Of a stretch of DNA of 64,000 bases, positions 13,841-58,438 are shown piece by piece. Position 1 is the first letter of the stretch; the number at the start of each line of letters is the position of its first letter. The position numbers and the translations under genes are program-made. The notes under the pieces were generated by a model, which searched no databases, was not told where the DNA came from, and saw only the letters and a program-made list of their open reading frames with translations. Source of the DNA: Oopsacas minuta (Eukaryota > Animalia > Porifera); contig JAKMXF010000359.1 in NCBI GenBank assembly GCA_024704765.1, positions 69,381 through 133,380 on the forward strand. Reading direction: 5' to 3'.

Positions 13841-15059
13841 TCAACATTTTGACTATAGATGAATAATTAATGTTCTACATGGTTTCAAAGATGGAGCAGT
13901 TTTTAATAATTATTTGCCAATTACGCTAACAAATCACATCACTTCTATCTGAAAAATTTCACCAATGTGGCTTTTGTGAATTCTTGCATATCAATAATAC
14001 GTTTATTCGGGTGAAAATGTGCCAGTTTCTCATTATCAGCGAATATAGAATTTCAAATCAAAGTTTACCCACTTCCTCTTTTTACTTGTCCAAAGTAGTG
14101 ATCAGGTCTTATCTTTAGTAGGCTATGACTTAATGTTTTGTTTATTATGGATCAATGATACAATTATTCGGGGAAAATACACCGTTTTGATATTATCAAA
14201 TAAATCTACTCGACTATATAAATATATTAGATATTTTATCCCTAGTCCAAAAAAATATTAAGCGGTCCATCGCCTTATGTATAGAATGCTATGGTTCTAT
14301 CTATAGCTGGAATATGTGTTGCTGTATTTCTTAGAGATTCTTGTCCCCGGGAAAGTGAAGCAGAATTATCACTTCCCTGGATTTCCCGTAAACCATGGAT
14401 GGTTTTGGATGCGACTTGTGACCAGATAAATGTCACTGACGAATTTATAATTTACTCTCAAAATTAGATCTGAATAATAGTGTAGGGTGTTTTGTCATGA
14501 TGTTGAGATAGAAATTTTGAAGTATCAATTAATTTGGTCATCATTTGAGTACTTCAATTTTTAATACAATAGAATCCCGCTTGATTATCTTCCACAATTT
14601 ATGATTTTTAGGGTAGATTCGACCGAAGCGAGACTAAAATTTGAGGGCCAATATTTTAGTGGATGGACATAGATTTCTAATTCCACTTTGATTTCCTATC
14701 ATTAAACATTATCAATTATCCTGGTGGAGGATATTTCCCCTATCTCCACTGCCGATGGCCACAAATCCTCCAATGAGGCGATAATGTGCTAAATGACTCA
14801 CTAAATAAGGTTGACTGTATAACTATAGTAGTTAAACAGTCAACAACCAGTACCTTGAACCTCAGGGGAAATCAAATCCATTCGAGTTTAAGGATTTAAG
14901 AAAATTTCATCATAAAATATCGAAGAATATCGTTTATAATTGGACGATAAATATCCAATAGATAATAAATATTGTCAACAATCCAATTGACGATTTAATT
15001 AATATGAAATGTGCCTATCGTCAATCCATAATTGTCTCAATTGGATTGAATTAGCATCA

Positions 15060-21352: not shown

Positions 21353-23519
21353 TTCGGCACAGGTTGTATTTTTCTATTTTTTATTATCATTATCAGTTAC
21401 CCATAAATTCTTTTTAGTAAATTTTAAATGATGACGTCATTTTCCCACATTTTGCTGTGTTCTCAAAATTCTAGCAATTTTTTTGAAATCCACATTGTCG
21501 ATTTCCTACCATCCTTCAGACCATTATTTCGCAACAGAGATACAGGCTGCGTCAGTGCCGCTGGCAATTTTTCACGATGGCGCCTGCCTCTCATACTCAG
21601 TATATTGGGTGGCTCATTTAATGACGATCTGCAACATTATGGTATACATTTTTCCTCTTCTATTCATTCATATTGTACGGTAATACGAAAGTATTTGATT
21701 TCTTATGAAATATTCCAAAAATTCTGTTTTGATTTGTCATCTCTGAGTTAAAAAGGAATGATAAATTGGATCCACAAGTATAATTCTAATAGTTATAACC
21801 CAAACGCAAATATCAAACACAACCGCACAAAATTTGCTCCTTCAGTCTTCGTTTTGTATGGTAAACATCCTTATTTGAGCATTGTGGAAATTTGTATATA
21901 ATGTATCGAAATTCGTGATTCATAAACTAATGAAAATTCTAATTATGTAAGAATTTTTTGCGGGCCGCTTAATGTATTGTGGACCCCTGTAGTAGACAAT
22001 CCATTTTAGAAAGTCTATAACAGATTTTCCTCTATTATATTTAATTTTAGAAACTGTTTTCCGTTTTTCATAAGTTTCTCGTTCTCGGGTACATAATTAC
22101 GTATATAGTCTTCTATTAAGTAGACCAAGTATGGTTAAAGTAACTTTCTTCCATCAAAGATATCACTGATTTAATTCGTTCAATTCCACTAACCCGAAAC
22201 ATGTTTTTTGAAACTTAAGTATCATGGACTTATACTCTGAGGCTTTGGCGTACTCTTTTAATGCAGTTCTTGCGGGCAACAGTTTATAGAGAATCAAGCA
22301 AAAAATAGGAACTTCCATGAGTTGTAATATAATTGCATACAAATTCCTAATTCAAACGCTGATATTAATATCAACAATAATTAAATAGAGAGAATCCAGA
22401 CTTCATCTAGAGCTAGCCTACCCCGCACCCTGGATGTTCATATATTCAATTACCCGCACCCTAGTTTATTAAGAACATGGGGATAGCACCTGATGAAGGT
22501 CAGATTTCGCGCACCCTCATGAATAGTTCTAAAAGTCACGCACCTAGATAAAGGCTTGAGAGAATCCCTTAACGCCTGCAAAAACGATTCATAGTCACAA
22601 AGTCTTTTGGCTCAGCAAATATTTATACGTATATCTTGGAGGGAGTAGCGAGTGGACCAAAATTTAGAATGCGGCCTCTTTTGAGTATTACCCAGGAGAA
22701 AATTCGACTGTACAGGGCTTGTATTGCGCTGTTACCAGGTATATGATTGACAAAGGTTTGTAGGTGCGAACTGTGTGAAAATACTGATTTAAGCTGATTA
22801 AAGTATATATTTATATATCAGAAATTGACCAACATCTAATGTTATGATTTGGCCAACAGCCGTCTAGAGAAATCTTGGAGGTTTATAGCCCACACGAAGA
22901 CCTTATGTGGCGACGACCCTCTAAATAGCCTATAAACCATTAATAACCAGATTTTTTTACTACAAGTTACCTCAGGAAGTAGCCATAGGTATATCTGATT
23001 TATATGATATCTCCATTTATTTCACGTATATAACAAGATTAATTGAATTATTTCGGAGAAAACCATATGCACATCATCATCGTGCTCGCCAGTATACTAC
23101 GAGATTTGTGAATTTCGCTTGGCGCAACTGCAACCTCATAAAGATAAATTCAGCCTCTTACCCCTATCAGTGGCCGCGGGGTAGGCCTTACCACCGTGAA
23201 GCATATAGCATTTTCTGAATGTGGTCTAAATAGGTGAAGATCATTGTGCTCTAGAGTAAGAAATGTCTTTCTATGGGAATTTTAGGTATCACCAGATATA
23301 TTATAGTATTTAGACCTTTTTTGTCAATATGGATTACTCATATTTCCGTTTGGAGAATTTAACGACATCACTCTTGTCTCGAATTTACAGTGTTCTTCAG
23401 AATGAGTTTGCTATAAGCGTGTTCCATTGTATATAGTTTGTTCATTCAGTATAAGTTGGATATATAATGTGTCCCCTTTTGCTATACCATTATTCAGCGA
23501 AAAAAGAGCTTATAGTGTA

Positions 23520-24832
23520 CAGGGTGACAATTAAGTTCTGATCCACGAATATACTCTGTTTATTCCTAAACTAGTTATTCTTTCAATCCAAATTTTCACT
23601 GACAGTTAAAGCATATTATAATAAATCTTCCTATCCAATTCTATTCGATATAACCGCCTTTTGCCTTTACTACAGCTTTAAGTCGTCCTTGAAACCATTG
23701 GACAGATTTACGGAGTTCTTCTTACGGAATTTTCTCCCATTCTATAATCAAAGCCTCCCGTAGAGATTCCAAATTTCCATGCGGAGTAGCGCAGGCTCTG
23801 CTCTGTAAAGTCCCCCAGATGGAATAGTCAAGTGGATTCAAATCCGGACTTGAAGGAGGCCATTCTTCCCTTGGACAAAAAGTCAATATTTTCCCCTAAA
23901 AGCCAGGATTGAGTTGCTTTCGAGGCATGCGCTGGCGCAGAGTCCTGCTGGAAAATCTAGGGTGTGTTTTTGAACAAGGATGAACCAGCAGATTTGATTA
24001 CAGGCTCAAGAATAAACTCTCTTTATATGTTTGCGAGTTAATTTTGACCCCTTGTGGGACAAAAATCAATTTTGTCCGAGAATCTGCTGACACCCCAGCC
24101 CAGACCATCACAGAAAGCGGTCTTTGCACTCGATCGATGAATTTAATGCTCTCAGGGATGTCTTTGCATGGCGACACAATCATTCTATCATTTTGACGGT
24201 TAGTTGCTTCATCTACCGTGAAAATCTTCTCGTCCGAAAACAATATCTGTTCAGAATCTTCATTTATGAGGCGCCACAGAAGCCTTTTGCACCTTTCAAG
24301 TCTTTTTATCCGAAGAGTGGGAGTGAGATGATGAACTGTTTGCCGTTTGAGTGATTTAAGTCCCAGGTCCTCATGTATCATCTTTCGCAATGTTTCGCGA
24401 TTAACAGGGTATTCCCTTGCCATCTTCCGGATTGACCGCCTGGGATTTCGGCGGATTTTACTGCGGAGTTTTTCCCTTAGTGCTCTCGTACGAACTGTCG
24501 CCGGTCGGCCAGAACGAGGCTTGTCCTCCACACTTTTGGTATCGATATATCGTTTAATAGTACGATAAATGAATAATCTGTTGATCTTTTCGTTTTTCAG
24601 ATTTTTCGAAATCTCGCTCTGTGTGCTCCCGTTCATAAATAATGAGATAATTTTTGACCTCTTTACTTCCATGTTGAAATTTCTGATTTTATGCGTATGT
24701 AGATTTAGATTACTGTTTGAGCATAACAGGAAGACATATATGTTAGAATATAAATGATAGAATTATAATAGAATATATTGGAAGCGTATCAGATCTATTG
24801 GAACTATGCATCAGAACTTAATTGTCACCCTG
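23520..24832 (-). mobile_element. DD37D (maT-type) element C, full length, frameshifted
   Basis: TIR cagggtgacaattaagttctgat, TA TSD; ORF 23998-24672 ends in frameshift (ESLFLSL). Confidence 0.93.
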
Positions 24833-26033
24833 TATTGATGCAACAATGTTAATACACTACGTATCCTGCATTAATATACATAGTTGTCAACTTTTGTGAA
24901 GTTTTTTCTTGAGTTTTTTCAGATGAGTTGTATATATTTAGTTTTGAAGTGAAATGGATGTCTAATAGAGCATTTACCACCATTATTGTGCAATAGTTTT
25001 CATTTTTGTATGTATGAGGGTTTCATTCAAGTATTAAGGGTCATCCGCCTATAACTGAATAGTTAGTATTTTCATATTCCTGGACTATACATTTGTTATA
25101 CGGCATAGGCAGGTTAATAACAAAATTTCTGCACTCCTGTAGGCGCGCGGCATACGCCTGGATAAACCCATTGTATGAATCACTGTGATACCTTCAATTT
25201 CCGCTGAAATTTTAGAGTAATAGTGCAAAAATAAAAGTGATGTTGTGTTCAAATACCTGAGTTTCACTTTATATTCGTGAGATTTGACAACCATGACTAT
25301 ATTGAATCTAATTTGATGATGCATCTAAAATTCCAAATCTCGATGAGTTATGGGTAATAGTTTTGGTCTTGCGTCATAGTATAGGGATCGACCCGCGATC
25401 TTGACCCAATATCCATTGACTCTTTCTCCACACTATGATCAGTTTAAACGTTATTGGAATTGGATCTCTGTCAGCATTGAATATTTTTAGATTTAACTTC
25501 ATACTTCGTATTACAAGACGTATAACTCACATGTTTTTCATAGCATCATGGATAGCGAGTAGATGGCTATATTTTGAAATTAAGGTCCAAACACGTTAAC
25601 TACTTGTGGTATGCCCTTTAAATGTATTTCCAACACGTAATTACGCTACGCGTTTACACACTTGCCTTCTCAAAATTTCTATCTCATCATCTGACTACGT
25701 AATTTCTATTTTGCATAATTTTTTAGTAGGTTTCGCCGCTGTTTTTAGCCTTCTAATGAGTAAGTTAAGTCTTTGATATTTATGTAGTATCATGATACCA
25801 TGTAGTGGTTTCGAATAGTAGAAATTTTGATGGAATGCTGATACAGTCCACTTTTGCTATTCAAATACAAATCAGATTCAGCAATTCTGATATACAGGTG
25901 TGTATTACCCCATTATCAATTTTTCGAATTGATGCAGCCAAATATTTTAGACTTATTCCCATTTTCATTTGTGCCACAAACAGCCAAGTAGCACACCGCT
26001 AGAATATTGGCACAACAATGGAATAGTGTATGA

Positions 26034-29000
26034 CAGGCACGTAGCTAGAGCAAGACATTCAGGGGGGCAAGAAGTATTTCGGGAGGGCAATTGCAGGGAT
26101 AAATATTTTTGAAAAGTTAATTACTTGTGTATAACAAGTACGACCCAGTCTCCTTTTCTTACATGTATAACTTTTTAATTCATAAAGTACCAGATTACTA
26201 GGCTAGGGAGCATTAGATTAGTCTACATTATAGTAAGAGCATTTATTAAGATACTAAACTCAATTCAGGGATACTATTTGACATTACAAAAGAAAGCGGC
26301 GGTGCTTCATCTGCTTAAAATGTTCGATCACATCATTATAACAAAGTGTTTCTGCAATATCTTTTTCAATAGATAACAGGGCAAGATGGTTGAGACGCTC
26401 AGTGGTCATTTGTGAGCGCAAACGTGTTTTTATTCTCTTAACAGATGAGAACATTCTCTCAACTTTGCAAGACGTCTGAGGGATAGTCACAAGAATTTGG
26501 TATAAGTTGAAAACATCAGGGAAAATATCTTTGTCAATCACATCCAGTACATCGATCAAAGTATTTAGCTGAGATTCATCTTTCGAGCAATAAACGAACG
26601 GAGAACTTCTATTTCACAATCTTTGATATCTATTGCATACAGTTCAGATAGTGTATTCAATTCCTGTTTGTTAAGAAAGTTTTGAGACCTTGGTAAGCAG
26701 CAATCAGCAGCCTTCATGATGCCTGATTGATCTGTACCAAAACGGGCATCCAATCCTGCTAAGATCTCGCGGACATTTTGGCGTAACAATATTTCAAGCT
26801 CTTCAAAGTTGGATGCGTTTGTGTGTCCAACAGAGCTATTTAGATATCCTTCTCTAAACCTTTCTGGAAGACGCCGTTGCCTGATTGTGTCTCTTACATC
26901 AAAATTTTCGATTTCATATTCACCAGACAAATCTTTGGCATATTCGACAACCTTGTCAAAATCGAAATTGACCAACCTTTCCCTCAGATCGGCAAGTAAT
27001 ATCAAACAAGAAGAAACAGTTGCTGTCGACTTCTGAAAAGCTTTAGTGCAAAAATCAGAGTAATCATACAGCCTACCAAAGTAAACTAAGATGGTCATAA
27101 ATTTCTTTGTTTGTAGACTACCTAGTAAAGATTTAGCTGCTAAACTTGTGTCTGCATCATTATCATTTCCAAATATGCTTAAAGTATCAAGTATGCAATC
27201 AAACCGACGCAGAAACCTTTCCACCTCCAAAGAACGGGAAGACCAACGAGTACTACATGAACGTGCAAGTTCAAGAGCTTGGACGTTGGGGGATAGCGCT
27301 CATCCTGGACGTCTATGAAAACTGCATGTCGCTTTGTTCCATTCATGAACGAATACGTCAAATCCAATATATCAAAGAAAGATTTCATCAGAGGATGTCG
27401 TTCAGCAGTTGCAGCTAATACTAAGTTAAGCCTATGTGAAGCACAATGAACATATGTGGCATTGCGATAACCTGCTCCTTTCATGCGGGCTTGGACACCA
27501 CCGTGTATTCCTGACATAACACTAGCCCCGTCGTAACCCTGCCCTACACATTTCAGAGGATCGAGCTCAAAAGGCTTAAGTAGCTCTATCAGTTTTTCAG
27601 AGATGGTGCCCGCATCCATGTCCTTCAATTCAATAAAGCCAATAGCTCTTTCTCGGACATTACCTTTATGGATATATCGCAAAGAAGCACCTAACAACTC
27701 CTTCTTAGATGCATCTTTTACTTCGTCAGCTAGAATAGCATAACAAGACGCGATTTCTACTTCACTTTTAACATAGTCTAGAAGCACTGAAGCGAGTGAT
27801 GTAAGCAAATCATTTTGAATATCTGGACTTAGCATTTTTGCATTTCCTGGAAGACTTTCTATCCTCTTGGTCACATTGCTATCATATTTTCCTAAAAGTT
27901 CTAATATTTCAAGAAAGTTCCCTTTATTAAGCGACTGATCTGATTCATCATCTCCTCGAAGAGGAATATCTTGTTTGACACAAAAAGTAATAATGTCAAG
28001 AACAGTCATTAAATGTTTCCGATTGTCATCTATGAATTTCTCATTTCGAAAATTGGGATCCAGTTGCTTATCTACCGTCCCTATTATTTGATGAATTGGC
28101 CAGACTTTCTGTGTTTCAACAGCTGCCATATGACACACAGAACTATCGTGCTTCCTGCACTTGTCGCCAAGTTTCCTCCAGTCACAAAGTCCTTTTGTTG
28201 AAAAAGTTGCTTCAGCTGTTGATCCTCCAAAAAGCCGACACGGTTGGCAAAATATAGCATCGAGTTCTTTGCTATACTCTATCCAGGAGAATTGGGCATA
28301 CCAATGAGTACTAAAATGTCTACCGGCCTCATTTTTTGGGAAGATAATAGAAGGCTGCCTCGGTTTCTCACCATTGTTGGACAAATCATTTACAGTCACA
28401 ATTGGTGATTGTATATGAGTCGTGTTTAAACTTGGAGTTGAAATAGTTGTACAAGAATCGGAAGTTAAAGGGGTCGAAACTTGAATACTCGTAACAACAG
28501 GCTCTACCTCCTCATAATTTGAAGAGACGACATGATCTTCGATTTCTATTCGATTTCTTTTAAAATATGCCTGAACTTTGCTTTGTTGTAGTCTTTTAGT
28601 CATCTAGAATTGTTTGAGATACGAGTCACTGAACTGATTGAAGAACAGAAAATGTGAAAGATTTGATGATATAGAATGACTTTATAACTTATAGAGAATA
28701 TCTGAAATTGGCTTCACTCATGTGTAAATTTCAAAACAAGCTTTGAAAACTGAAACCCTAAGAGCATCACCAATGCTTCAATTACTTCAATGGACAGTCT
28801 AACTTCTGACAACAATTACTAGCGGTCGTGGTAATTCAATTAAAATTATAGTCGAAATTCAGTGCCTGTCAAAATAGAACAAGTTTACTATCAATGAGCG
28901 TTACTTCCTGTCTAGTATTAAAACCATCATCGCAACGCGAGTTATTAATTTCATAGTTTTGACGATGCAGTTGAAGTACATAGGCTATTAATTACAGTGG

Positions 29001-29229
29001 AGTTCGCTTATTAGCAACTCGGATTTTGCAGAGATTCGGTTGCTAATAGGACAACGAAATTAACATTATAATCCCGTTTGGGACCCGAAAGCTGGTTGCT
29101 AATAGAGCAATATTACTAATAAGCTAACTACATTGTATATAAAAACAAAACTTCCAAATTTATCTGGGGGGCGAGAAAAACTTTTGGGGGGGCGACTGCC
29201 CCCCCTTGACCCCCGTAGCTACGTACCTG
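26034..29229 (-). mobile_element. hAT element (TTF-type Zn finger / DUF4371 / dimerisation-domain transposase), left copy
   Basis: TIR cagg(c/t)acgtagcta; ORFs 27179-28603, 26565-27230, 26284-26559 (YSKELDAIFCQPC, ILADEVKD, GQGYDGASVMSG, HCASHRLNL, SCKVERMFS). Confidence 0.95.
28995..29135. mobile_element. Decayed Tigger-type MITE carried inside the hAT 5' region (twin at 32916-33056)
   Basis: TA|cagtggagttcgcttattagcaa ... ttactaataagctaactacattg|TA. Confidence 0.7.
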
Positions 29230-32819: not shown

Positions 32820-35800
32820 CAGGTACGTAGCTACGGGGGGGGCAAGGGGGGGCAGTCGCCCCCCCAAAAGTTTTTCCCGCCCCCCAGATAAATTTGGAAG
32901 TTTTGTTTTTATATACAATGTAGTTAGCTTATTAGTAATATTGCTCTATTAGCAACCAGCTTTCGGGTCCCAAACGGGATTATAATGTTAATTTCGTTGC
33001 CCTATTAGCAACCGAATCTCTGCAAAATCCGAGTTGCTAATAAGCGAACTCCACTGTAATTAATAGCCTATGTACTTCAACTGCATCGTCAAAACTATGA
33101 AATTAATAACTCGCGTTGCGATGATGGTTTTAATACTAGACAGGAAGTAACGCTCATTGATAGTAAACTTGTTCTATTTTGACAGGCACTGAATTTCGAC
33201 TATAATTTTAATTGAATTACCACGACCGCTAGTAATTGTTGTCAGAAGTTAGACTGTCCATTGAAGTAATTGAAGCATTGGTGATGCTCTTAGGGTTTCA
33301 GTTTTCAAAGCTTGTTTTGAAATTTACACATGAGTGAAGCCAATTTCAGATATTCTCTATAAGTTATAAAGTCATTCTATATCATCAAATCTTTCACATT
33401 TTCTGTTCTTCAATCAGTTCAGTGACTCGTATCTCAAACAATTCTAGATGACTAAAAGACTACAACAAAGCAAAGTTCAGGCATATTTTAAAAGAAATCG
33501 AATAGAAATCGAAGATCATGTCGTCTCTTCAAATTATGAGGAGGTAGAGCCTGTTGTTACGAGTATTCAAGTTTCGACCCCTTTAACTTCCGATTCTTGT
33601 ACAACTATTTCAACTCCAAGTTTAAACACGACTCATATACAATCACCAATTGTGACTGTAAATGATTTGTCCAACAATGGTGAGAAACCGAGGCAGCCTT
33701 CTATTATCTTCCCAAAAAATGAGGCCGGTAGACATTTTAGTACTCATTGGTATGCCCAATTCTCCTGGATAGAGTATAGCAAAGAACTCGATGCTATATT
33801 TTGCCAACCGTGTCGGCTTTTTGGAGGATCAACAGCTGAAGCAACTTTTTCAACAAAAGGACTTTGTGACTGGAGGAAACTTGGCGACAAGTGCAGGAAG
33901 CACGATAGTTCTGTGTGTCATATGGCAGCTGTTGAAACACAGAAAGTCTGGCCAATTCATCAAATAATAGGGACGGTAGATAAGCAACTGGATCCCAATT
34001 TTCGAAATGAGAAATTCATAGATGACAATCGGAAACATTTAATGACTGTTCTTGACATTATTACTTTTTGTGTCAAACAAGATATTCCTCTTCGAGGAGA
34101 TGATGAATCAGATCAGTCGCTTAATAAAGGGAACTTTCTTGAAATATTAGAACTTTTAGGAAAATATGATAGCAATGTGACCAAGAGGATAGAAAGTCTT
34201 CCAGGAAATGCAAAAATGCTAAGTCCAGATATTCAAAATGATTTGCTTACATCACTCGCTTCAGTGCTTCTAGACTATGTTAAAAGTGAAGTAGAAATCG
34301 CGTCTTGTTATGCTATTCTAGCTGACGAAGTAAAAGATGCATCTAAGAAGGAGTTGTTAGGTGCTTCTTTGCGATATATCCATAAAGGTAATGTCCGAGA
34401 AAGAGCTATTGGCTTTATTGAATTGAAGGACATGGATGCGGGCACCATCTCTGAAAAACTGATAGAGCTACTTAAGCCTTTTGAGCTCGATCCTCTGAAA
34501 TGTGTAGGGCAGGGTTACGACGGGGCTAGTGTTATGTCAGGAATACACGGTGGTGTCCAAGCCCGCATGAAAGGAGCAGGTTATCGCAATGCCACATATG
34601 TTCATTGTGCTTCACATAGGCTTAACTTAGTATTAGCTGCAACTGCTGAACGACATCCTCTGATGAAATCTTTCTTTGATATATTGGATTTGACGTATTC
34701 GTTCATGAATGGAACAAAGCGACATGCAGTTTTCATAGACGTCCAGGATGAGCGCTATCCCCCAACGTCCAAGCTCTTGAACTTGCACGTTCATGTAGTA
34801 CTCGTTGGTCTTCCCGTTCTTTGGAGGTGGAAAGGTTTCTGCGTCGGTTTGATTGCATACTTGATACTTTAAGCATATTTGGAAATGATAATGATGCAGA
34901 CACAAGTTTAGCAGCTAAATCTTTACTAGGTAGTCTACAAACAAAGAAATTTATGACCATCTTAGTTTACTTTGGTAGGCTGTATGATTACTCTGATTTT
35001 TGCACTAAAGCTTTTCAGAAGTCGACAGCAACTGTTTCTTCTTGTTTGATATTACTTGCCGATCTGAGGGAAAGGTTGGTCAATTTCGATTTTGACAAGG
35101 TTGTCGAATATGCCAAAGATTTGTCTGGTGAATATGAAATCGAAAATTTTGATGTAAGAGACACAATCAGGCAACGGCGTCTTCCAGAAAGGTTTAGAGA
35201 AGGATATCTAAATAGCTCTGTTGGACACACAAACGCATCCAACTTTGAAGAGCTTGAAATATTGTTACGCCAAAATGTCCGCGAGATCTTAGCAGGATTG
35301 GATGCCCGTTTTGGTACAGATCAATCAGGCATCATGAAGGCTGCTGATTGCTGCTTACCAAGGTCTCAAAACTTTCTTAACAAACAGGAATTGAATACAC
35401 TATCTGAACTGTATGCAATAGATATCAAAGATTGTGAAATAGAAGTTCTCCGTTCGTTTATTGCTCGAAAGATGAATCTCAGCTAAATACTTTGATCGAT
35501 GTACTGGATGTGATTGACAAAGATATTTTCCCTGATGTTTTCAACTTATACCAAATTCTTGTGACTATCCCTCAGACGTCTTGCAAAGTTGAGAGAATGT
35601 TCTCATCTGTTAAGAGAATAAAAACACGTTTGCGCTCACAAATGACCACTGAGCGTCTCAACCATCTTGCCCTGTTATCTATTGAAAAAGATATTGCAGA
35701 AACACTTTGTTATAATGATGTGATCGAACATTTTAAGCAGATGAAGCACCGCCGCTTTCTTTTGTAATGTCAAATAGTATCCCTGAATTGAGTTTAGTAT

Positions 35801-36017
35801 CTTAATAAATGCTCTTACTATAATGTAGACTAATCTAATGCTCCCTAGCCTAGTAATCTGGTACTTTATGAATTAAAAAGTTATACATGTAAGAAAAGGA
35901 GACTGGGTCGTACTTGTTATACACAAGTAATTAACTTTTCAAAAATATTTATCCCTACAATTGCCCTCCCGAAATACTTCTTGCCCCCCTGAATGTCTTG
36001 CTCTAGCTACGTGCCTG
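32820..36017 (+). mobile_element. hAT element, right copy (inverted twin of 26034-29229)
   Basis: Same TIRs; all three ORF translations identical to the left copy, including two shared frameshifts. Confidence 0.95.
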
Positions 36018-37287: not shown

Positions 37288-37667
37288 GTAAGTGTCTCCT
37301 TTAGAATTTTGATTGCCTATCGTTTCTGAAGTGATATGTGGCAATGTAGTAAGTTCAGCAAATTTGATCATGGATTTGTGACCCCTCCCTCAAGTAAACA
37401 CTTGTATCTATAGAACCGTTGGGTTTTACTCGAAGGATAGTATTTTATCATTGTAGAAATTCATTTCTTCGATTAGAGTTCTAAAATTTGGAAATTCTGC
37501 CAATTATTTTGTCTATATTACTCATTATTTTCGAAATTTTCTGCGTCTTATCTGTATATCCAATGTAATGCTAAAAACTAACATTGAAATCAAATTTTAT
37601 ATTATCAAATGATGTTTTACAAATATACAAATTTATTTTGCATAATTTGCACATTCCTGAATAATTA

Positions 37668-38962
37668 CAAGGGTTGTTCAATAAATAGTGAGACTGTTTT
37701 TCATAATTCATATAGTAACCCGATACTTATCATAATTGATTATCAAATGTTTCGATAAATTCCCCCTTAAACTATATGCATCGTTTCCATCGTTTTGGTA
37801 ACTTTTCCATCCCAGTGTGGTATAGAATTCTTTAGGTGTCCCTTTTTCCCACTGTTTTCTTTCGTACTCCAGCCGTTTGAAATCCTCAAATCCCTTCCCT
37901 CGAAGAGGTCCCCTCATCTCTCCAAACAGCCAGTAGCCGCTGGGAGCCAGGTCTGGACTATGCGGGGATGAGGGAGGCATTCAAACCCTAAGTCGTCAAT
38001 TGCAGTCATTGTCTTGGAGCTTACATGGGGCCTTGCGTTGTCATGTTGCAGCAGTACGCCACGTGTTAACTTTCTCTCGCCTCTCACGTTTATTCGCTTG
38101 ACGCAATTCGTTCAATTCGTCAACGTAATAATCACTGTTCATGGTTGTCTTCTCAGGCAACCAGTCGAGGTGGATAATTCCTTCCCTATCCCAAAGTACT
38201 GTTGTCACTCTCTTCCCTGCTGATTTTGCGGCCTTTACTTTGATATGTACCAGTTCATCACGTCCCTTCCACTGCTTCGATTGAGTTTTACCCTCTGGTT
38301 CATAATAATGAAACCAAGTTTAATCCCCCTTTACTATACGTTCCAAAAGTCTTCCTCTACCAGATATCATGAAAGTAATTCTTTGCTAACTCTGACCCTT
38401 TCGCGTTTTTGTTCTTTTGAAAGAAGTTTCGAGACGCAACGCGCAGTTACCTTCGACATTTCCAGATCTTCAGTAATAATCGAGTGTAGTGTGGCTTTTG
38501 ATATACCTACCCTCTCTTCTAACTCTCGCAGGGTTATTCGTCTGTCCTCCTCGATATTTCTGCGGGTTTTGGAGGAAGTCGCACAACCTGGAAGAGGATC
38601 ATCGTGGCGGACCTTATCGCCATTATCAAAACGTTCGATCCATCTATATATGGTGGCTTTCGAAGGACATTCATCTCCGAAAATATCCTGCATTTCACGA
38701 ATAATGTATGAGTCAGTCTTCCCCTTTTTCCACAGGTACCAAAATATTTGTCGTTTTCCTTCTTTGCTAAAATCCACTAGTTAAAAAAAGTAGCCTATGC
38801 AAATGAAACTTTATACTGAAGAATATGCTAGGAGAGTAAAGAGTATTGTGTATAGAAGTTAGACAATCAAGTTAGGCTTGTAATCTGATATTAGGCTTAG
38901 AGCTGTATTAACTAGAATATGAATCCGATACATTAGTCTTATTACTTATTGAACAACCATTG
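37668..38962 (-). mobile_element. mariner (DD34D-type) element G, defective
   Basis: TIR caagggttgttcaataa; fragments 38367-38777 and 37708-37980; HDNARPH...SPDLAPSGYW (third Asp replaced by Gly). Confidence 0.92.
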
Positions 38963-40081
38963 CATAACCCGAAATCATTGAATTATGATCGAATCAGGAT
39001 AGCTAATTTAAGGTAAATTTCAAGCTTAACATATCCTTGTAGTACAATTAGACAAAGTATTCCATACCAATGTGACCTAATCATGGTTATGCCCATATAT
39101 GGTCATTTCAAGATTGCGAAATTAACTTTAGCGATATCATATCAAACGTATCACAAGTATACGTTAAGTTGGATCCGGAATATATATTGGTTATCCTGAT
39201 TTGACTATAATTTCAACGATTATCGAGTCATATGTTGATTTTGACAAACTTCACCCATGTTCTCTACTGTAACTCAGAAGCGTGCCAACTAATCATAAAA
39301 ATTTTTATCATATTTTCTGTAGAACAATTTACAGATATACATGCGATCGAAGTTAGGTCAATTTAGAGGAATTTATTTTGTAAATTAATGCTTATTAATC
39401 AAATATATTGGCACAAATAGAAAAATTTGCTCTATTGGACTGATGGAATGTATTTCTAACATTATGGTATACTAACTAAGCAGGAAGTGAAATTAGTGCA
39501 TATATGTCTAAAACTGTCTGATGTCGATATAATAAGGATATCACTATAAATTGAAGGTGTTTAGGTAAACCCTGTTATCCACGGACTTCTTAAAATTGAC
39601 TTCATTTACGCTAATGATATATTTCTTGCGCAGAAAGTCAACTGGATAAGGAAATTTGAGAATATTATAATATATGGAAAGATGTATATATCTCATATCG
39701 TACATCCTACAAATATTTTCAGGATACAAATATGACCGTTTGACACATAAAATATGACTTACTAGAGTACAATAATGCATTATTAGTGTTCAGTATTAGC
39801 AGATTCCGGGATATCAAGAAGTTTACTATCCTGTTATGGCCTAAGCTAATCTCACAGTATAACGAAGGCCATGTATCTAAGGACTCTGAACTGGGACATA
39901 AACCAGTATTCACAGATGGTGTCATTCAAGATTGGATCATAAATTTAAAAGATAGAATATGAAGATATTGTGGCATGGAAAGTAGGGATCACACTAAGTA
40001 CATATTTGTAAATCACTTAAAAACAGAAATACAAGATATCCAGTCTTGATTATTGGCAAATTGTACCATCCCCGGTATCTA

Positions 40082-42759
40082 CAAGGGTTGTTCAATAAGT
40101 AATGAGACTAATGTATCGGATTCATATTCTAGTTAATACAGCTCTAAGCCTAATATCAGATTACAAGCCTAACTTGATTGTCTAACTTCTATACACAATA
40201 CTCTTTACTCTACTAGCATATTCTTCAGTATAAAGTTTCATTTGCATAGGCTACTTTTTTTAACTAGTGGATTTTAGCAAAGAAGGAAAACGACAAATAT
40301 TTTGGTACCTGTGGAAAAAGGGGAAAACTGACTCATACATTATTCGTGAAATGCAGGATATTTTCGGAGATGAATGTCCTTCGAAAGCCACCATATATAG
40401 ATGGATCGAACGTTTTGATAATGGCGATAAGGTCCGCCACGATGATCCTCTTCCAGGTTGTGCGACTTCCTCCAAAACCCGCAGAAATATCGAGGAGGAC
40501 AGACGAATAACCCTGCGAGAGTTAGAAGAGAGGGTAGGTATATCAAAAGCCACACTACACTCGATTATTACTGAAGATCTGGAAATGTCGAAGGTAACTG
40601 CGCGTTGCGTCTCGAAACTTCTTTCAAAAGAACAAAAACGCGAAAGGGTCAGAGTTAGCAAAGAATTACTTTCATGATATCTGGTAGAGGAAGACTTTTG
40701 GAACGTATAGTAAAGGGGGATTAAACTTGGTTTCATTATTATGAACCAGAGGGTAAAACTCAATCGAAGCAGTGGAAGGGACGTGATGAACTGGTACATA
40801 TCAAAGTAAAGGCCGCAAAATCAGCAGGGAAGAGAGTGACAACAGTACTTTGGGATAGGGAAGGAATTATCCACCTCGACTGGTTGCCTGAGAAGACAAA
40901 CCATGAACAGTGATTATTACGTTGACGAATTGAACGAATTGCGTCAAGCGAATAAACGTGAGAGGCGAGAGAAAGTTAACACGTGGCGTACTGCTGCAAC
41001 ATGACAACGCAAGGCCCCATGTAAGCTCCAAGACAATGACTGCAATTGACGACTTAGGGTTTGAATGCCTCCCTCATCCCCGCATAGTCCAGACCTGGCT
41101 CCCAGCGGCTACTGGCTGTTTGGAGAGATGAGGGGACCTCTTCGAGGGAAGGGATTTGAGGATTTCAAACGGCTGGAGTACGAAAGAAAACAGTGGGAAA
41201 AAGGGACACCTAAAGAATTCTATACCACACTGGGATGGAAAAGTTACCAAAACGATGGAAACGATGCATATAGTTTAAGGGGGAATTTATCGAAACATTT
41301 GATAATAGTTATATACAAAATTGTGGAACGATTTTGATGATTAAATGACAATAGCTGAAATTGAAGAATTTGAAGGGATTGCTTATGAATGGGTTAAGTA
41401 TATATCCACAACAGGTCTAGAATTTGTAATTTTCTAGTTGGAAGATTGTACCAATATGCGATTAAATATATATGAAATTAAACATACAGTTATGTTTATT
41501 ACCAACTAAATCATATCAACATTTACTATCACTAGTACGCTGTGCTTCCTTGCGCTACGCGGATTCTAACACTTCGTGTCTGTACTCGGCCTTCGGCCCT
41601 CGCTTTCACTATTAGTTTGTGTGATATTCGGATTCAGCGTAACCCGATTACCCCATAATAACCGTTGAAACCACGTTTCCAGGATTATTTTGAAATTTGT
41701 TTACTTTTCGTTTACTTTATATTCATATAAACAACTAAAATTTGTATGACAAATCCATGAGTGTGATTCGGATTCAGCATATTCGCTAACCTTCCGTCAA
41801 GTTTATGAAATTTGTATATTTTCTTGATTAACACCATAGATATATAGATACATGCATTTTTGCAACTACGAATTCCACATTCCATTCCAGCTTCCCTAGC
41901 AACGGACAAACGGACAGACAGACAGATAAACAGATAGCAGCGACAATGATAGTATCTCCATTACTATCATTGTCACTGCAAATGTCCAATATTTCAAATG
42001 GAACTGTGCAGGTAGGTCCTCTGAATGTGGAACTGGCCTAATGGCGGACGGTACGTCTGGTTACGCAATAGTGGATTTATTCTTTATTGTGATACCATCA
42101 ATTTTCGTCATCCAGTAATGACAATCTGAAAGAAGACACATTGGTTCTCTCCATATCATTGGAACCGCAAACGGGATTATATTTCTCTTCCCAGCATACC
42201 ACAAGCGTCTTTCAGGCATTGTGTGCAGCCCACGGCTTATCTTGATCCCCGAGATGGCATCCAAAATTAGCGAAATAACAGTTTTCTACAGCTTTTGTGA
42301 TTTTGTCATTGGTTAGTTGTAGTATACCTCCCACAAATATAACAATACTTTTCGGAGAATTTTTGCAAACCAGAGAAGCCATAAACAATAAAATGAACGA
42401 AATATACTAAATGTCGAGTGGAATAAAACAGATTATAACTACTATTAGAGGCAATTTAGATCATGTAAGCAATGAAACCAAATAAATTGGATGTTGATGT
42501 GTAGAATTGAATTTAGAAATATTTTTGACCATGTGGTCAGCTAAAAGATCGGCATAACTAAAATAGAAATTTCTTACTTTTAGTACCCTCGAGAACGAAA
42601 AACATTGATAATAATTCCCAACATATATCTACACTATGCAAAACACTAGAGAAAGAAGATCATTAAGAATGTTGTATATCAGTGTAATCAATTATGATAT
42701 ATATCGGTTTACTATATGAAATATGAAAAACAGTCTCAGTATTTATTGAACAGCCCTTG
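40082..42759 (+). mobile_element. mariner element H (inverted twin of G) carrying a 1.38-kb Chapaev-derived insertion near its 3' end
   Basis: TA|caagggttgttcaataag ... tattgaacagcccttg|TA; ORF fragments identical to G. Confidence 0.92.
41306..42684 (-). mobile_element. Non-autonomous Chapaev3-type derivative, copy 2
   Basis: Homologous to 10174-11542; TAA TSD (41303-05, 42685-87); the empty site gaTAAtcaattatg is visible in sister element G. Confidence 0.88.
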
Positions 42760-44246
42760 TAAGTGGATATTGACAAAACATATGTCATTTATCGTCTCTC
42801 CTGTTACTCAGAACCGTGCCAAATTTATCATGACAAACCTTTGGATATTTTCTCCAGAAACTGTTTGAATCATTTAGTATTTCAACATTTGATCAAATAT
42901 CAATATTTTGGCTAAATTAGTGTTTGCTATAGAAATATATTGGCACATTTCGAAAGAATTTGCTTTTCCTTACTGATGGTATGTATTTCTTTTGGGAAAT
43001 TCATATTTTCTATGGTGACTTAGCTTATGGTCAGAATCATGGCTTAAGGATATTTATCACATCGAAGGGTACCTGTGATTCAAATTTCAAATTTGATATT
43101 CTACAAGCTGACAATCATGTTTTAATTTCGCCATTGATTGAATTTCCCCCAAGACTCGAACTTGTCCGAGTTGGCCCAAAATACCTATGTATGCTTAAAA
43201 TCTGCCATGGGGGTCTTCCATTCTCTTCTAACAATTCTGGACCTACTAACATATATTACATGCTTAAATTTATATTGAGATTAATTGAGTTTTCATTGTA
43301 TAGATTCGTGTATTAATCGGCTCAGAGCTCATGAAAGTTTATTTCGATCTTTCATGATCAGAGGGAGTTTACTATTTCATGCAATTGTAGTACTTTTATA
43401 TTTCTTCTTTTATGTACCTGCAGTGGAATCCGGATTTATCCTAATTCTTTCCAAAATTTATTTGTCTGGAAGTATACTTCTTATACACTTCCTTGTTTTA
43501 TTTTAATGAAGAGAACAGATATTTCTTTTGACTCACTTTCAAAATTTGTGCTTTGTATTTTTATTTTCATTGATTACAATCCATCCTGGCAAAATTATTG
43601 AACAAGACTGTCTTTGTCCATTACGAATTGCCCTACCGCACATTTTTCCCAATATTGTTTTATTTAGGGCCGATCCCTCGTTTAAGAAGTGTTTTCAATG
43701 GCACTTGTATTTAGCAATAATATTACCCATTCATATGTTATTAATATGTTAGATATCTAAACTAAGTTATACAAGCTTTTTTACTTTGCCCAATGGATAC
43801 CAAGTGGCCCCTTTTGATACAAAGATTTTTGTAATTGAATTTTTATGTTCATTCTTTTATTCATTCTTTTATTCTGCCTTTTGTATGACTAAAATCAAAT
43901 TGTCTATAGCGACTCCTAATGTTTGGAATTTCTTCTTCCCACACAAAATCATGTCCCACAATGGCTGTTCATTTGGAACAATTTACTGCTAACTCCTGAT
44001 TAAGCGAATAGATTTTAGCCATCATTTGGTGTTCGTATTTTCATGTTTCACTGTACTTATTTTTTGTACGGTTAAACCTTCAGGAAGTTAACACTCTGGA
44101 ACAGCCAAATGTTCACATATGAGAGGTGTTCACTTTGAGAAAGAGAAAGTGTGCTCATCTTTTGGAGGTGTTCACTTTTGTACATTTATTTGTACTCCCT
44201 GTTCATCTAATTCAGTTTTGAGTTCTTTTAATGTGTATTTCTTTAG

Positions 44247-50110: not shown

Positions 50111-52699
50111 TATATTTTTCATTATCGGATATTTTTGAGTGACATTGTTGCTACAGTACAGGCATCGAGATCTGTTAAATTTGTCTTGCACTGCTGCTAC
50201 TTAAGCTGTAAGATGATAATTTCTAGTACCCTTACCTCCTAGATGTTGCTCAGATGTCTCAATATCTTCTAGATGTTGCTCTGGATGTTTTTAAGCAATA
50301 TCTAGTTACTTATTTTGATATTTATTGTATTAGTTAATGAAATTGCTTCAAATTGTAGTATTGGTGATATGTTCCACAATTCTTACTCTTTTTAAGAGTT
50401 TGGCCTTGGATTAGTGTCAAAATGCCTAACAATGCAATGTTTCTCATGTGTGTTTCTACCTCTTACATGTAGCCCTGTGTGTTTTGATCAAAATTTTGTT
50501 ATTTTATGGGATTTAAACTTATATGTTCTAGTATTTTCTTCCAAATTTATCCGATCCCTGGACCGTTGTTATATATTATTCAATTCCAGTATTTGTACCT
50601 TACTCCATGTTCAATTTCTAGTATCCCGTTAATTTACTTTACCCACATACTAAAGCCTTTGAGTCTCATCTGCTTCAATCCTAAAATCCTGCAAATTTAA
50701 CCCCATTGGCGACTGCCCCAACTCATTCCAACATGTCCTTGCTCTAATTCATTAACAAAATTTAATATTTCCACATCCTACTATACTTAGGACCCCAAAA
50801 CTCCTTCAGGATTTGTACCTTGGATGTATCTGTCTGGTTAAGTATTTCTGTGTTTACTATATTTCCATACGTCCCATTTTGACCGAATACATGTATTGCA
50901 TATATGTAGGACAACAAATATTATCAACCAATATAAGTGCATGCTAAAATACTTCATCATTGTGTCAATATATTTGTCTAGTAAGTATTTATCTGACAGA
51001 ATGTGTCCTTCCTTGATGTATTGTTGAACGTTAAATATTGGATATTTCATGCTTTTATATACATCGACCAAATCTTGAAGGCAAAAGTTGTCTCGTTCTT
51101 GAGTTACAGCACACAGCATATCTCACACTTTACTATTATATTATATAGCGATAATCGTGAATGTTTTTGCTCATGCAGGATAGCCAATTCATTGTAAATT
51201 TCAGACTTCCCATGACCGTATAATACATTTGATGTGATATATCTCTTACAAAGCGACCTAATTGCTACTATGCTCATATATTGTCATTTTGTTACATTAC
51301 GCTATATTATTCAGACATATCACATCGGAAGTATTTTGAAGATGTGGGCGGTTGACTATTTTCCACAAATTGGCCTTCCAGATTTAACAGTGGCTCATTC
51401 CCTTATAAATGAATTGGTTGATACTTTGTTGTTCTACATAAATGCTATCCATTTTTCGAGCAAAAATGAACAATTTCTGGTATATAGAAACTGCATGCAA
51501 ATACTCCGGTCGACACGTTCATCCCTGGCCCATAATGCTAAAAGAGTTGGGGGCCTTGTGTATAACATATAATTCCTAGTTTCAATTCAGTGATTATCAA
51601 TTCTAGGTCATTCAAACTTATTGCGGGTCATGTGGTGAAATCTAACCTAAACACTATGCATTAATTGCAGTTACAATTATTACTAATTCAAATAATCCTC
51701 TTCCACTCCTACACACTGTTTTTTATGTGGGTAGAGCGACGCTCTACCTACTTAAACACTCATTTATGTACTCTTCTTCGGGATAGATTTAAATTTCTGG
51801 TCCAGGGCCGCTCCTAGGGTATGTGGCGGGACAAACTCCATACCTTAAAGGTAGATTTAGTTTTGGAGAATAGGAAAAAATCGCAAGGAGCTAGGTCTGA
51901 TGAGTATGGAGGCTGTCTTATTAAATCTAACCCCTCTGCGTCCAAGAAATTTTTGTGAACTTAGTTGCCTAACGAGTATAATTATTCTCAAGGGAGCAGG
52001 AGCATTCGTCTGGAATTTCTGCTAATTGTTCTCTGAGTGTATGCAAACATCGTATTCTGTATTCTATTTGAAATGTCACAATATTGTAATGTAACATGTG
52101 CAGGTCCGGTGAGAGGGGGGTTTAGTGATCCCAATGAACCGGATTGCGTGGCAAGAGGGGGTGTTAAAGATTGAAATTGTTATTACTGTATATATTTATG
52201 GTTGGGTTCAACAGTCAAGTGAAGTTCTTGTGAACTTGTTATTGTGTTACTTTGCTAGAATATTTGAAATTTCAATTATATTACAAGTAATTACTACGAC
52301 TTTACATTTAATAATCAATATTTAATTGAGTTTTCTCCCCCAAATCATTACAACTTAGTGAATGTTTATTTGGTTTATTATTTACAAGTCAAGTAAATAA
52401 TCAATTTGTGACACCATTATTTTTATAAACTCCTTGAATACACATATGGTATACAGACTATTTGATCTTGTCGCCCAAATTCGGGATTGCCCTTCGTTTC
52501 TCAATCATGGCATTCATTTTCTGTTAATTATAGCGAACAATGTTACAATACTTGTTCTAGTAGTAAAACGAGTAGAATTGAAATTCTATAATTTGAATAA
52601 AAAATCCTCACTCGAAGTACTATAAATTTCATCTGTACTTGTACTGGGACGTAGTTATGCTTGCGAACTATCAAAATTTATTCATCTAACCTTGTTATG

Positions 52700-54635: not shown

Positions 54636-57121
54636 CAGTGACCAAGCGCCTGGCTGCGCAACTACCAATCGATTAAGAGATATTATTAGTTCGTAATTTA
54701 TTATTAATATAAGTATAAATAGACCAGGGTCTAAAATTTCTTTCTGCGTTCATGTATTATAGTCTCTCCTTGTTCAAACATATTTAGCCCATCTGTAGAT
54801 CGTTTAATAAACTCTTCCATAAGATCTTTTACAGGTAGGCTTGTTCCCACTAAGTCCCGGTGACTGTTTAGAAACGCAAGACGACCCATGCGTTCATGAC
54901 CTTGGGTTGACCTCAAGTGTGTGAGTAACCTTCGCAACATACTAAAAGCTCTCTCTGCTTCGCATGTCGTCACGGGGAGTACAAGGTACAAAACAAGAGC
55001 GGTGCGCAAACCAGGTTATGACCTTCATTCCGGGTTCAACTTGAGTGTTTTCTTCAGAAATTGTCAGGAAATCTCGATGCCTTCATTATCACAGCGGTTA
55101 AACCAAGCTTGCCTTCCCACCTTAGTTGTGCCAATTCTGGAAGGTCACCATTATAGAATCTCGTCAGCTTTTCTAGGTCCTTATCCACTATGTTCTTATT
55201 CTCCAACCCGCATCTCAGCAGCTCATCCACGGTCTTGTAGAGAATACTGGGTAATGGGAGCCCACGCTGCCGTTTGTAATACCTACAAGCATACTTTGCT
55301 ATAATCTTACAATTCCTTCTGCATGATAAACATCCAACCAACAGGCTTGTACATATCTACATATCTCTTTTGGATCTGAATATCTATTTCCTGGGTGTTT
55401 GAATCTATTGGAATACCTCCTCACTCTTTTCGGTTGCTCTACGTAGTCGAAAAGGTTGGCGTTGGTCTAATCTAAGATCTCCTGCAGCTTTCTTAACGTC
55501 TTTGTAGAAAATCAGGGCATTTTCATTACTGAAAGCTTGGCTACTAAGAACAGTCACGAGGCTGTTAACCAACTTTCTGACATCACCAACTGTGATTTCT
55601 CGACCTTGACACATAGGGTGAACAGGGTTTGTTAGGGACAATATCTTCTCGAATATCACAATACCAAAATACGTCTCGAATGGTTGAAGAGAAGGCCGAA
55701 AAAAGCGTGATTCGGCACGCTTCTCAGGTTTGAGCGTTCTATCATCTTGTAGCAATTCAAGAAACTCGACAATCATAGTATATTGCGCCAACAGGCTTTC
55801 AATGCTAGAGAGCCTCATTATCCACTCTTTAGACAAAGTGGCCTCAGTCCGCGCTTGTCAAGTTTGGGGTTCTCCAAAGCTGCCGCAGCTACTATCTCTT
55901 TAAACAATACATATCTTTTGGTGGATGTTTTTATGAAGTTGATTACTGCACGTACCTTCTCCAACGCGTTTTCCAATTCTCGCACAGATTCCATGCTGTC
56001 TTGAACCACCAGATTAATGTTATGCCAAAAACATGATGCCCATGACGCTTTAGCGTTCTCAGCGCGAACTTTGGCTTGGAGACCATTGTGGCGTCTAGAC
56101 ATATTAGCTGCTCTATCATATCTCTGCCCCTCATCGCATCAAATGGTAATTCAATGCCAGTAAGGCATTCTTAAGAATAGTTAATAAGGTATCAGCGTCT
56201 GTAGTAGTTGCCTGAAAGAAGCCAAAAACATATGTATTGAATTCAGAACCGCGTTAACGTGGCGGATGCACACACTAACTTGCTCACGTTTCCTGATATC
56301 CTGCGTCTCGTTCATTATGACCGAATATAATAAACGGCCCTGCTTCTTTGCTTCCCCAGCTGTGGATTCTTGTTTCATGAGCGTAATAAAGTATTTAGTT
56401 ATTTTATCTCTCAACATATTTATTTGTTCGTTTTGAATTTCAGGACTCATAAATTTTATTCGTGCACTCGAAGAAAACAATATTTTGGCTTCGTCATTGA
56501 ACCTCGATACCAGAAGAGCAAGGTTTCAGATATTTGAGGTATCTTTTTCGTCCCTGTGCCCTAGTCATTGTGTTGCACACGTCTTAACAGAGTCGAATAC
56601 TGCTCTGAGACCTGTCCTATTGAGCTCAATATCCCCACGCTTGATCCTCTCAAATCTATGGTCAATGACTGGTGTATTTAGCTCCATTTGATAGATTAAC
56701 CAAGCCTTTTGGTGGTCGGACTGGTTCTCTACCATATGTCTGCCTATCAAGTGAGTTTTTACCTTTCTTAAAGCTTCTCCATCCCTCACCATCACCTGTT
56801 TTGATCCACTTTGAGGTGCCTCGTGTATTACCCTTCTCAATGGGTCGTATCCAATTATTCATGATTGCTCTACGCCTACGGCGCAATTACAAGTCTCCAT
56901 GTCCTCATTGAGTTTACACCACTGCTTTTGCATATAGCTCGTAGTATACTCATCTTTTTTGAAAGCCATATGCTCAGGAATGTTCTCTAAATCATGCAGG
57001 TCAGGGAGAACACAATCCTTTAAGTTAGTTTCGTAGATTTGGGGAGGGGTAGTTGGAGGAATCTCTTGGACCGAAAGTGAAATAGGAGCGAGGCATGCAA
57101 GTTCCAGTTACCCCATAATTA
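54636..57121 (-). mobile_element. Decayed hAT element (second family), truncated or interrupted by element D
   Basis: Fragments LLYSVIMNETQDIRKREQVSVCIRHV, CFWHNINLVVQD, LPVTTCEAERAFSMLRRL...ERMGRLAFL; left boundary tentative (cagtgacc). Confidence 0.78.
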
Positions 57122-57123
57122 TA

Positions 57124-58438
57124 CAAAGTGACAGTTAAGTTCTGATGCATAGTTCCAATAGATCTGATACGCTTCCAATATATTCTATTACAATTTCTAT
57201 CATTTATATTCTAACATATATGTCTTCCTGTTATGCTCAAACAGTAATCTAAATCTACATACGCATAAAATCAGAAATTTCAACATGGAAGTAAAGAGGT
57301 CAAAAATTATCACATTATTTATGAACGGGAGCACACAGAGCGAGATTTCGAAAAATCTGAAAAATGAAAAGATCAACAGATTATTCATTTATCGTACTAT
57401 TAAACGATATAACGATACCAAAAGTGTGGAGGACAAGCCTCGTTCTGGCCGACCGGCGACAGTTCGTACGAGAGCACTAAGGGAAAAACTCCGCAGTAAA
57501 ATCCGCCGAAATCCCAGGCGGTCAATCCGGAAGATGGCAAGGGAATACCCTGTTAATCGCGAAACATTGCGAAAGATGATACATGAGGACCTGGGACTTA
57601 AATCACTCAAACGGCAAACAGTTCATCATCTCACTCCCACTCTTCGAATAAAAAGACTTGAAAGGTGCAAAAAGCTTCTGCGGCGCCTCATAAATGAAGA
57701 TTCTGTACAGATATTGTTTTCGGACGAGAAGATATTCACGGTAGATGAAGCAACTAACCGTCAAAATGATAGAATGATTGTGTCGCCATGCAAAGACATC
57801 CCTGAGAGCATTAAATTCATCGATCGAGTGCAAAGACCGCTTTCTGTGATGGTCTGGGCTGGGGTGTCAGCAGATTCTCGGACAAAATTGATTTTTGTCC
57901 CACAAGGGGTCAAAATTAACTCGCAAACATATAAAGAGAGTTTATTCTTGAGCCTGTAATCAAATCTGCTGGTTCATCCTTGTTCAAAAACACACCCTGG
58001 ATATTCCAGCAGGACTCTGCGCCAGCGCATGCCTCGAAAGGCAACTCAATCCTGGCTTTTAGGGGAAAATATTGACTTTTTGTCCAAGGGAAGAATGGCC
58101 TCCTTCAAGTCCGGATTTGAATCCACTTGACTATTCCATCTGGGGGACTTTACAGAGCAGAGCCTGCGCTACTCCGCATGGAAATTTGGAATCTCTGCGG
58201 GAGGCTTTGATTATAGAATGGGAGAAAATTCCGTAAGAAGAACTCCGTAAATCTGTCCAATGGTTTCAAGGACGACTTAAAGCTGTAGTAAAGGCAAAAG
58301 GCGGTTATATCGAATAGAATTGGATAGGAAGATTTATTATAATATGCTTTAACTGTCAGTGAAAATTTGGATTGAAAGAATAACTAGTTTAGGAATAAAC
58401 AGAGTATATTCGTGGATCAGAACTTAATTGTCACCCTG
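57124..58438 (+). mobile_element. DD37D element D, inverted twin of C
   Basis: Same 224-aa frameshifted ORF with 5 aa differences; TA TSD; 5' TIR decayed (caaagtgacagtt). Confidence 0.93.

Follow-up and report, generated by a model that had tools for sequence, protein, structure and literature searches.

We report here on an inverted pair of mariner transposon copies, named G and H, located in an intron of the glass sponge Oopsacas minuta (assembly GCA_024704765.1). The pair lies on a 152-kb contig, within the stretch of 64,000 nucleotides that we analysed as a whole and call the window; all coordinates refer to this stretch. The inverted pair is real, and the heads of the two copies face each other across a spacer of 1119 bp. 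G is uninterrupted, and H is a split copy (40082-41305 and 42688-42759), broken 72 bp short of its outer end by an inserted element of another type. From element position 246 up to this insertion the two copies do not differ by a single substitution, whereas their ends have diverged. We consider that gene conversion, that is templated repair between the arms, which was unable to cross the insertion, is probably the best explanation of this pattern.

Substitutions between the two arms lie at the ends

The two arms were compared by global alignment, and positions are given in the orientation of H, as element coordinates. Ends included, the arms are 99.2% identical, with ten substitutions and one 1-bp indel. 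Four of the substitutions fall in the head, at positions 4 (G 38959/H 40085), 23 (38940/40104), 131 (38832/40212) and 245 (38718/40326), and six in the tail (H 42700, 42701, 42708, 42721, 42739 and 42753), while the single indel is one A more in H than in G, at 40898 (position 817). Element positions 246-1236 hold no substitution. A preliminary description of this DNA had counted about three differences away from the tips and six in the last 72 bp, and the alignment returns both counts unchanged.

Substitutions are found at 0/979 sites in the centre (246-1224) versus 10/317 outside (Fisher p=7e-7), and when differences were placed uniformly in a simulation, a difference-free run of at least 991 bp was obtained in 0 of 200,000 trials. 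The step stands at the insertion, with 0/99 or 0/245 sites substituted to its left and 6/72 to its right (p=0.005 or 1e-4, respectively). The pair thus contains a contiguous tract of low divergence between paralogues, set against flanking homologous sequence that has diverged, which is the signature of gene conversion. The TAA duplicated on both sides of the inserted element, where G has a single TAA, together with a sister copy of this element elsewhere in the window, indicates that the insertion is genuine and that the 72-bp tail was once part of the same mariner copy.

Six further full-length mariner copies, taken from other contigs of the same assembly, served as outgroups, and the column states at the variable sites were compared directly. 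The closest of these unlinked copies, L001, is 94.6% identical to G and the others 85-89%, and word searches, which covered annotated proteins only and give a weak negative, found no relative nearer than L001. In Logan short-read contigs the mariner family is large, with most members 90-95% like G and H, and at many sites nearly all the family read depth differs from the letter common to G and H. With the nearest copy at 94.6% and most of the family at 90-95%, the central identity of G and H is not the effect of a young family. In the centre 0/950 sites are derived in a single arm, compared with 8/299 in the ends (p=1e-5, six outgroups), so that the two regions have incongruent histories, with private substitutions outside the tract and none inside it. 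By comparison, sites derived in both G and H and in no other copy make up 2.0% of the centre and of the ends alike. Together with the lack of central one-arm sites, this indicates that G and H form a single private lineage whose members split later, and that only the centre lacks the divergence that followed the split. Three of the tail substitutions are clearly private to H (42700, 42721 and 42753) and two are ambiguous.

The same comparison bears on the idea that all copies of this mariner are conserved in the centre and variable at the tips, so that the pattern would be a property of the family. In the unlinked copies the divergence runs from 8.6% in the head through 9.1% to 9.7% in the centre and 12.9% in the tail. 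The tail is indeed slightly more variable than the centre (12.9% versus 9.7%), but this is a 1.3-fold ratio, compared with more than 80-fold between G and H. Since the six unlinked copies diverge evenly, the end-limited pattern is specific to G and H, and the ends of the element are not intrinsically fast-evolving. The preliminary description had named unlinked copies that are equally identical centrally and divergent at the tips as the observation that would overturn its interpretation; they differ by 8.6-12.9% in all regions. The 8-12% by which their centres differ refutes a family property, to which we leave practically no chance.

The age of the insertion bears on the identity of the centres. 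The inserted element begins with TAGTTATATAC... and finishes with ...GTATATCAGTG; its right end, CAGTG, is intact, and its left end reads TAGTT instead of CACTG. In the sister copy (10179-11545, 92% identical) the CACTGATATAC ends are intact and TAA is again duplicated, so that the two copies between them display CACTG/CAGTG ends and a 3-bp TAA duplication; no transposase is encoded. At least 11 substitutions in the copy carried by H differ from both the sister copy and the majority read letter, and three more changes lie within its first five bases. The insertion is therefore not recent, and the H arm is not young. Judged from these sequences, the centre of H should have drifted from G at least comparably to the insertion, yet it has not. 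The preliminary description had concluded from the decayed left terminal inverted repeat (TIR) that H is old; the insertion is indeed not recent, but the contrast of an old H with a young G finds no support in the private changes (three to five in the H tail, one or two in the G tail and three in the G head), since seven versus two is not significant.

At the left terminus of the inserted element (41306-41310, TAGTT, versus 10179-10183, CACTG, in the sister copy), two of the three changes equal the bases of G at the same offset past the TAA. We considered these changes as spill-over of the tract and rejected this, because a match of two out of three arises by chance about once in four. Both copies of the inserted element are preceded by ATAA and followed by TAATCA, a shared context that suggests a target preference of this element.

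Table 1. Coordinates of the mariner pair, of its parts and of the changes assigned to each arm.
Feature	Position	Strand	Remark
Arm G	37668-38962	-	uninterrupted defective mariner of 1295 bp, with its head at 38962 and its tail at 37668
G tail, 72 bp	37668-37739	-	corresponds to the H tail beyond the insertion; G-private change at 37719; three-way difference (G, H, family) at 37688
G side of the substitution-free tract	37740-38717	-	element positions 246-1224
G head end	38718-38962	-	element positions 1-245; G-private changes at 38959, 38940 and 38832
Spacer	38963-40081	.	left 0.5 kb (38963-39470) is part of the palindromic host repeat
Arm H, head and centre	40082-41305	+	element positions 1-1224; H-private A at 40326, extra A at 40898
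H side of the substitution-free tract	40327-41305	+	from the G/H alignment
Left TAA target-site duplication of the insertion	41303-41305	.	G has a single TAA at this place
Inserted element in H	41306-42684	.	1379 bp, non-autonomous, putatively of CACTA/Mirage/Chapaev type; encodes no transposase
Right TAA target-site duplication	42685-42687	.	read from the sequence
H tail, 72 bp	42688-42759	+	split off by the insertion; six substitutions versus G (8.3%)
Right flank	42760-43000	.	outer arm of the host repeat that also adjoins the G head
G-private changes	element positions 4, 23, 131, 1245		
H-private changes	element positions 245, 817 (+A), 1237, 1258, 1290		
Ambiguous change	element position 1238		
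G, H and family all differ	element position 1276		

Exchanged flanks and a probable copying between the arms

In the assembly, the flanks of the pair are exchanged. When the reverse complement of 38963-39470 is joined to 42760-43000, the composite aligns across the join to a host repeat at 13342-13868, while with the present-day junctions the alignments to this repeat stop at the mariner; one weak match, to another copy of the repeat (51116-51334), extends past the G junction by about 27 bp. The locus thus consists of inverted copies of one family with exchanged flanks, as in transposon-mediated inversions. Because the host repeat that adjoins the G head continues at the H tail, these two must be the ends of one original insertion. 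It follows from this continuity that private changes occur at both ends of one original copy, whose centre equals that of the other copy. The orientation of the spacer may be the assembler's choice, and we do not count the flip as independent proof of recombination between the arms.

This continuity is what decides on a chimeric origin of H, in which two copies in direct orientation, one young and G-like, the other old and bearing the insertion, would have recombined, deleting the sequence between them and placing a young head and centre on an old tail. One crossover would then be enough to join a young-looking centre to an old tail. With the G head and the H tail derived from one insertion, however, a deletion chimera is excluded. 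Furthermore, private changes are also found in the head that goes with the old tail, and it would take a coincidence for the crossover to lie as close as about 35-100 bp to the insertion. We therefore hold such a chimera to be very improbable.

The pair could also have been identical at birth, through an aberrant transposition of a single parent copy (insertion of a hybrid element between sister chromatids, or a local duplication) that flipped the spacer, the end differences being acquired later by some end-specific process. The hybrid-element model does yield identical inverted copies flanking an inversion (PMC2775673), the split host repeat suits this topology, and G and H share private changes, ends included. 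Twins of this kind are predicted to diverge evenly, however, and the six other copies show no end-specific mutator. Moreover, most private changes lie on the ends that a twin birth leaves uncut (the G head and the H tail), and the insertion, with its at least 11 private changes, would have to be younger still than a birth which, judged by the centre, was very recent. A birth as twins is in our opinion improbable, although less so than a chimera.

Gene conversion would account for these observations in the following way. Two copies of one private mariner lineage would have come to lie head-to-head, 1.1 kb apart, and would have been split long enough to reach about 2-8% divergence at their ends. 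The 1.4-kb CACTG-ended element would later have inserted itself into one copy, 72 bp short of its outer end. At least one event of homologous repair would then have copied one arm onto the other, by gene conversion and possibly with a crossover in addition, overwriting roughly positions 132 or 246 to 1224 and erasing all substitutions there. Such a tract could not continue past the 1.4-kb heterology unless the insertion was deleted or copied, neither of which has happened. The 72-bp tip would have been too short to recombine alone and would have kept its full divergence; indeed, 72 bp is very short given the minimal-homology requirement of homologous recombination. The head ends may have been spared since tracts need homology on both sides and would rarely reach the last bases.

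The preliminary description had argued that a single crossover between an old and a young copy would leave divergence throughout, and we agree: reciprocal crossovers, in whatever number, merely swap segments and leave divergence everywhere, as the chimeric Galileo copies at Drosophila inversion breakpoints illustrate (PMC2775673), and tract-limited identity requires non-reciprocal copying, either gene conversion or gap repair templated by the other arm. Its further proposal, that near-identity stopping at the 1.4-kb heterology marks a conversion tract, is strengthened by the step at the insertion and by the restriction of the pattern to this pair, but must be toned down in two respects. With about ten end differences, the end of the tract near the insertion can be placed only to within about 35-100 bp, and the opposite end (131-245) has no insertion or heterology that bounds it. 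The sequences themselves show the map of differences, its polarisation, its restriction to this pair and the age of the insertion; we infer from them the copying event, its direction and the choice between one and several events.

Assembly effects and the evidence from reads

For this genome, Illumina and Canu-corrected PacBio reads were assembled together in SPAdes 3.9 (k up to 99), and SSPACE, Pilon 1.21 and GapFiller were run afterwards (PMC10280926). Several points weigh against gene conversion as the explanation of the pattern. De Bruijn bulge removal can erase sparse differences between two copies, and polishing restores differences near unique anchors only; every retained substitution between G and H lies within 245 bp of unique sequence, as an artefact would give. 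The Logan read contigs come from one sample, probably the source of the assembly, and leave the arms unphased. Bubbles at 1-2% density were being collapsed, given the second haplotype described below. A neighbouring pair of hAT twins has the same end-limited pattern, which may reflect either a shared biology of close inverted repeats or a shared assembly effect and is thus compatible with an artefact. The end counts are also small, with 3/131 in the head versus 6/72 in the tail (p=0.07). Finally, the shared derived sites are equally dense in both regions (2.0%) and have no power to give the direction of copying.

The read contigs support all four junctions but do not link them across the arms. 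For the H tail, a contig of run X1 covers 42619-43000 with 0 other letters. Contigs of runs X2 and X3 are 1-2% off the assembly in the flanks and spacer (37400-37752, 38931-40109 and 42614-43000), while the X1 contigs are exact. The sample contains either a second haplotype or a second individual. This second version also carries the junction of the G tail and that of the insertion with the H tail. According to the read contigs, the mariner and the inserted element are both high-copy families. Exact-product look-ups with three open reading frames (ORFs) of the window returned no independent assembly of the locus.

In its full form, the artefact would run as follows: the arms differ at a low, roughly even density, their interiors were merged and the path used twice, and Pilon restored the anchored differences only. 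The use of SPAdes and Pilon fits such a collapse of the interior, as do the surviving differences, which in the mariner pair and the hAT twins alike lie no more than 245 bp from unique sequence, the fact that the lone deep-interior difference between G and H is a homopolymer indel, and the second haplotype in the sample. A collapse needs sparse differences, however; at 8%, or even at 2-3%, a 1-kb interior is a bulge too long to remove. The 99-245 bp beside the insertion are anchored as well as the head, yet they hold 0 differences, versus 6/72 beyond. The isolated single-nucleotide differences at 131 and 245 also survived assembly. An internal control is provided by an inverted 1.3-kb Tc1-like pair (23518-24835 / 57121-58440, TIR CAGGGTGACAATTAAG...), whose copies are 32 kb apart and 98.7% identical. 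At 1.3% divergence, this pair kept 15 evenly spread substitutions and 2 indels in the same assembly, showing that interior differences can survive; it is also private, with next relatives at no more than 88% amino-acid identity in a word search of annotated proteins. At most, an artefact would turn a divergence of under about 1% into 0%, and the step at the insertion would remain. Part of the central identity is thus open to an assembly artefact, but as the source of the whole pattern we regard it as rather unlikely, although it is the most serious of the alternatives. As a practical consequence, identical interiors of neighbouring repeats and flipped spacers in this SPAdes-based assembly need confirmation by long reads before a biological reading.

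Identity of the elements and comparison with known systems

G and H are mariner copies by several marks. The Pfam domain HTH_48, the helix-turn-helix of Mos1, matches the ORF of the twins (E=7e-9), and two ORF pieces align to the structures of Mos1 and SETMAR, with the motifs HDNARPH and SPDLAPS-Y. The terminal inverted repeats are about 28 bp long, and TA is found at three of the four element flanks, with CA at the flank of the G head. The Mos1-type helix-turn-helix, the alignment to the DD34D domain, the short TIRs and the TA target are thus those of the mariner class, with the catalytic triad broken by a change equivalent to Mos1 D284 to G (APSDYHLF in Mos1 versus APSGYWLF). With an in-frame stop, frameshifts and the third catalytic aspartate replaced, G and H are, to judge by their sequence, a dead mariner. 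This is where they differ from the Mos1-type mariner (DD34D), with which they share HTH_48, the motifs, the TIRs and the TA flanks.

The in-frame stop, the frameshifts and the loss of the aspartate had been listed in the preliminary description as common to G and H. They are present, and the D284G change is confirmed, but the stop, the first frameshift and D284G also occur in the unlinked copy L001 (L001:2732-4023), and H carries one frameshift (+A) that G lacks. Being found in L001 too, they are traits of a subfamily and no argument for conversion. Derived sites shared by G, H and L001 amount to 38/950 in the centre, all of them between 186 and 1127, versus 2/299 in the outer parts (p=0.002), and include the stop codon and D284G. 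The subfamily formed by these three copies is non-autonomous, and its ends look conserved relative to the interior, as expected if the ends alone were needed for mobilisation in trans.

Heterology-limited conversion tracts and a minimal homology requirement are known from experimental work in yeast and mammalian cells. G and H are similar in that a large insertion ends the tract and 72 bp of isolated homology are spared; they differ in that the case comes from a single natural locus.

Among natural systems, the palindrome P6 of the human Y chromosome has conversion tracts of 1-2 kb and rarer inversions that arise from the same recombination intermediates (PMC3723533). Like P6 and the palindromes of the X chromosome (PMC8981503), G and H have inverted arms, a unique spacer and an identity far above the expectation from age. 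The sex-chromosome palindromes, by contrast, are segmental duplications with arms of 9 kb to 1.45 Mb, whereas G and H are two transposon insertions of 1.3 kb, gene-free and on no sex chromosome. Palindromes of the Y/X type have arms of about 9 kb or more kept above 99.9% identity by recurrent conversion; with 1.3 kb and 99.2%, G and H fall outside this class. The analogy with the Y palindromes made in the preliminary description therefore holds for the mechanism and, with arms of this length, goes no further.

The Galileo copies at inversion breakpoints in Drosophila buzzatii are chimeric (PMC2775673). They resemble G and H in being inverted copies of one family, with exchanged flanks and a mosaic of two parents. 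Galileo copies, however, are reciprocal chimeras that are still divergent, while the centre of G and H is homogenised and needs a non-reciprocal step. Overall the process is well known, and G and H are most likely a small new instance of it in a sponge, an ordinary conversion between neighbouring repeats. If real, the locus offers a natural conversion tract halted by an insertion, with a 72-bp remnant too short to recombine, and shows that pairs of transposons can act as small palindromes in a sponge; next to nothing is known about recombination parameters in sponges. The age of such pairs would come out far too low if it were estimated from the identity between the two copies.

The hAT twins mentioned above (26034-29229 / 32820-36017) are 3.2 kb long and differ at five places, all 20-178 bp from the ends. 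A single substitution lies 61 bp inside one end, and the other end has three substitutions and a 2-bp indel at a distance of 20-178 bp. Their 2956-bp interior holds no difference (Fisher p=2e-6).

More generally, close inverted transposon twins in this glass sponge might be miniature palindromes that are repeatedly homogenised and sometimes flipped, with tracts that stop at heterologies and miss the last 100-250 bp. We put this forward tentatively, as a generalisation that is rather doubtful at present. Both the mariner pair, with its 1.1-kb spacer, and the hAT pair, whose spacer is 3.6 kb, would fit it, and the pair 32 kb apart would not. Were it true, tract length, minimal homology and the effect of distance on mitotic or meiotic conversion could be read from such natural pairs in an early-branching animal.

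The host repeat next to the mariner pair is palindromic, about 0.5 kb long (outer arm, palindromic core, outer arm), and present in several copies of 60-70% identity (13342-13868, 38964-39457, 50947-51334 and 5600-5898 in the window, and L005:18882-18993). One of its copies was the target of the mariner insertion. The repeat may be similar to miniature inverted-repeat transposable elements.

Further mariner-related sequence was found at 61447-62367, where a distant mariner-like coding remnant has 28-69% amino-acid identity to H in tblastx segments. Moreover, two annotated proteins of O. minuta (P0005 and P0006) are 100% identical to 60% of the N-terminal ORF of the mariner (40267-40677); they are named as a G-protein alpha subunit (136 amino acids) and as SETMAR-like (164 amino acids). 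At least the annotated G-protein alpha subunit looks like a gene model in which transposon sequence has been taken up as an exon.

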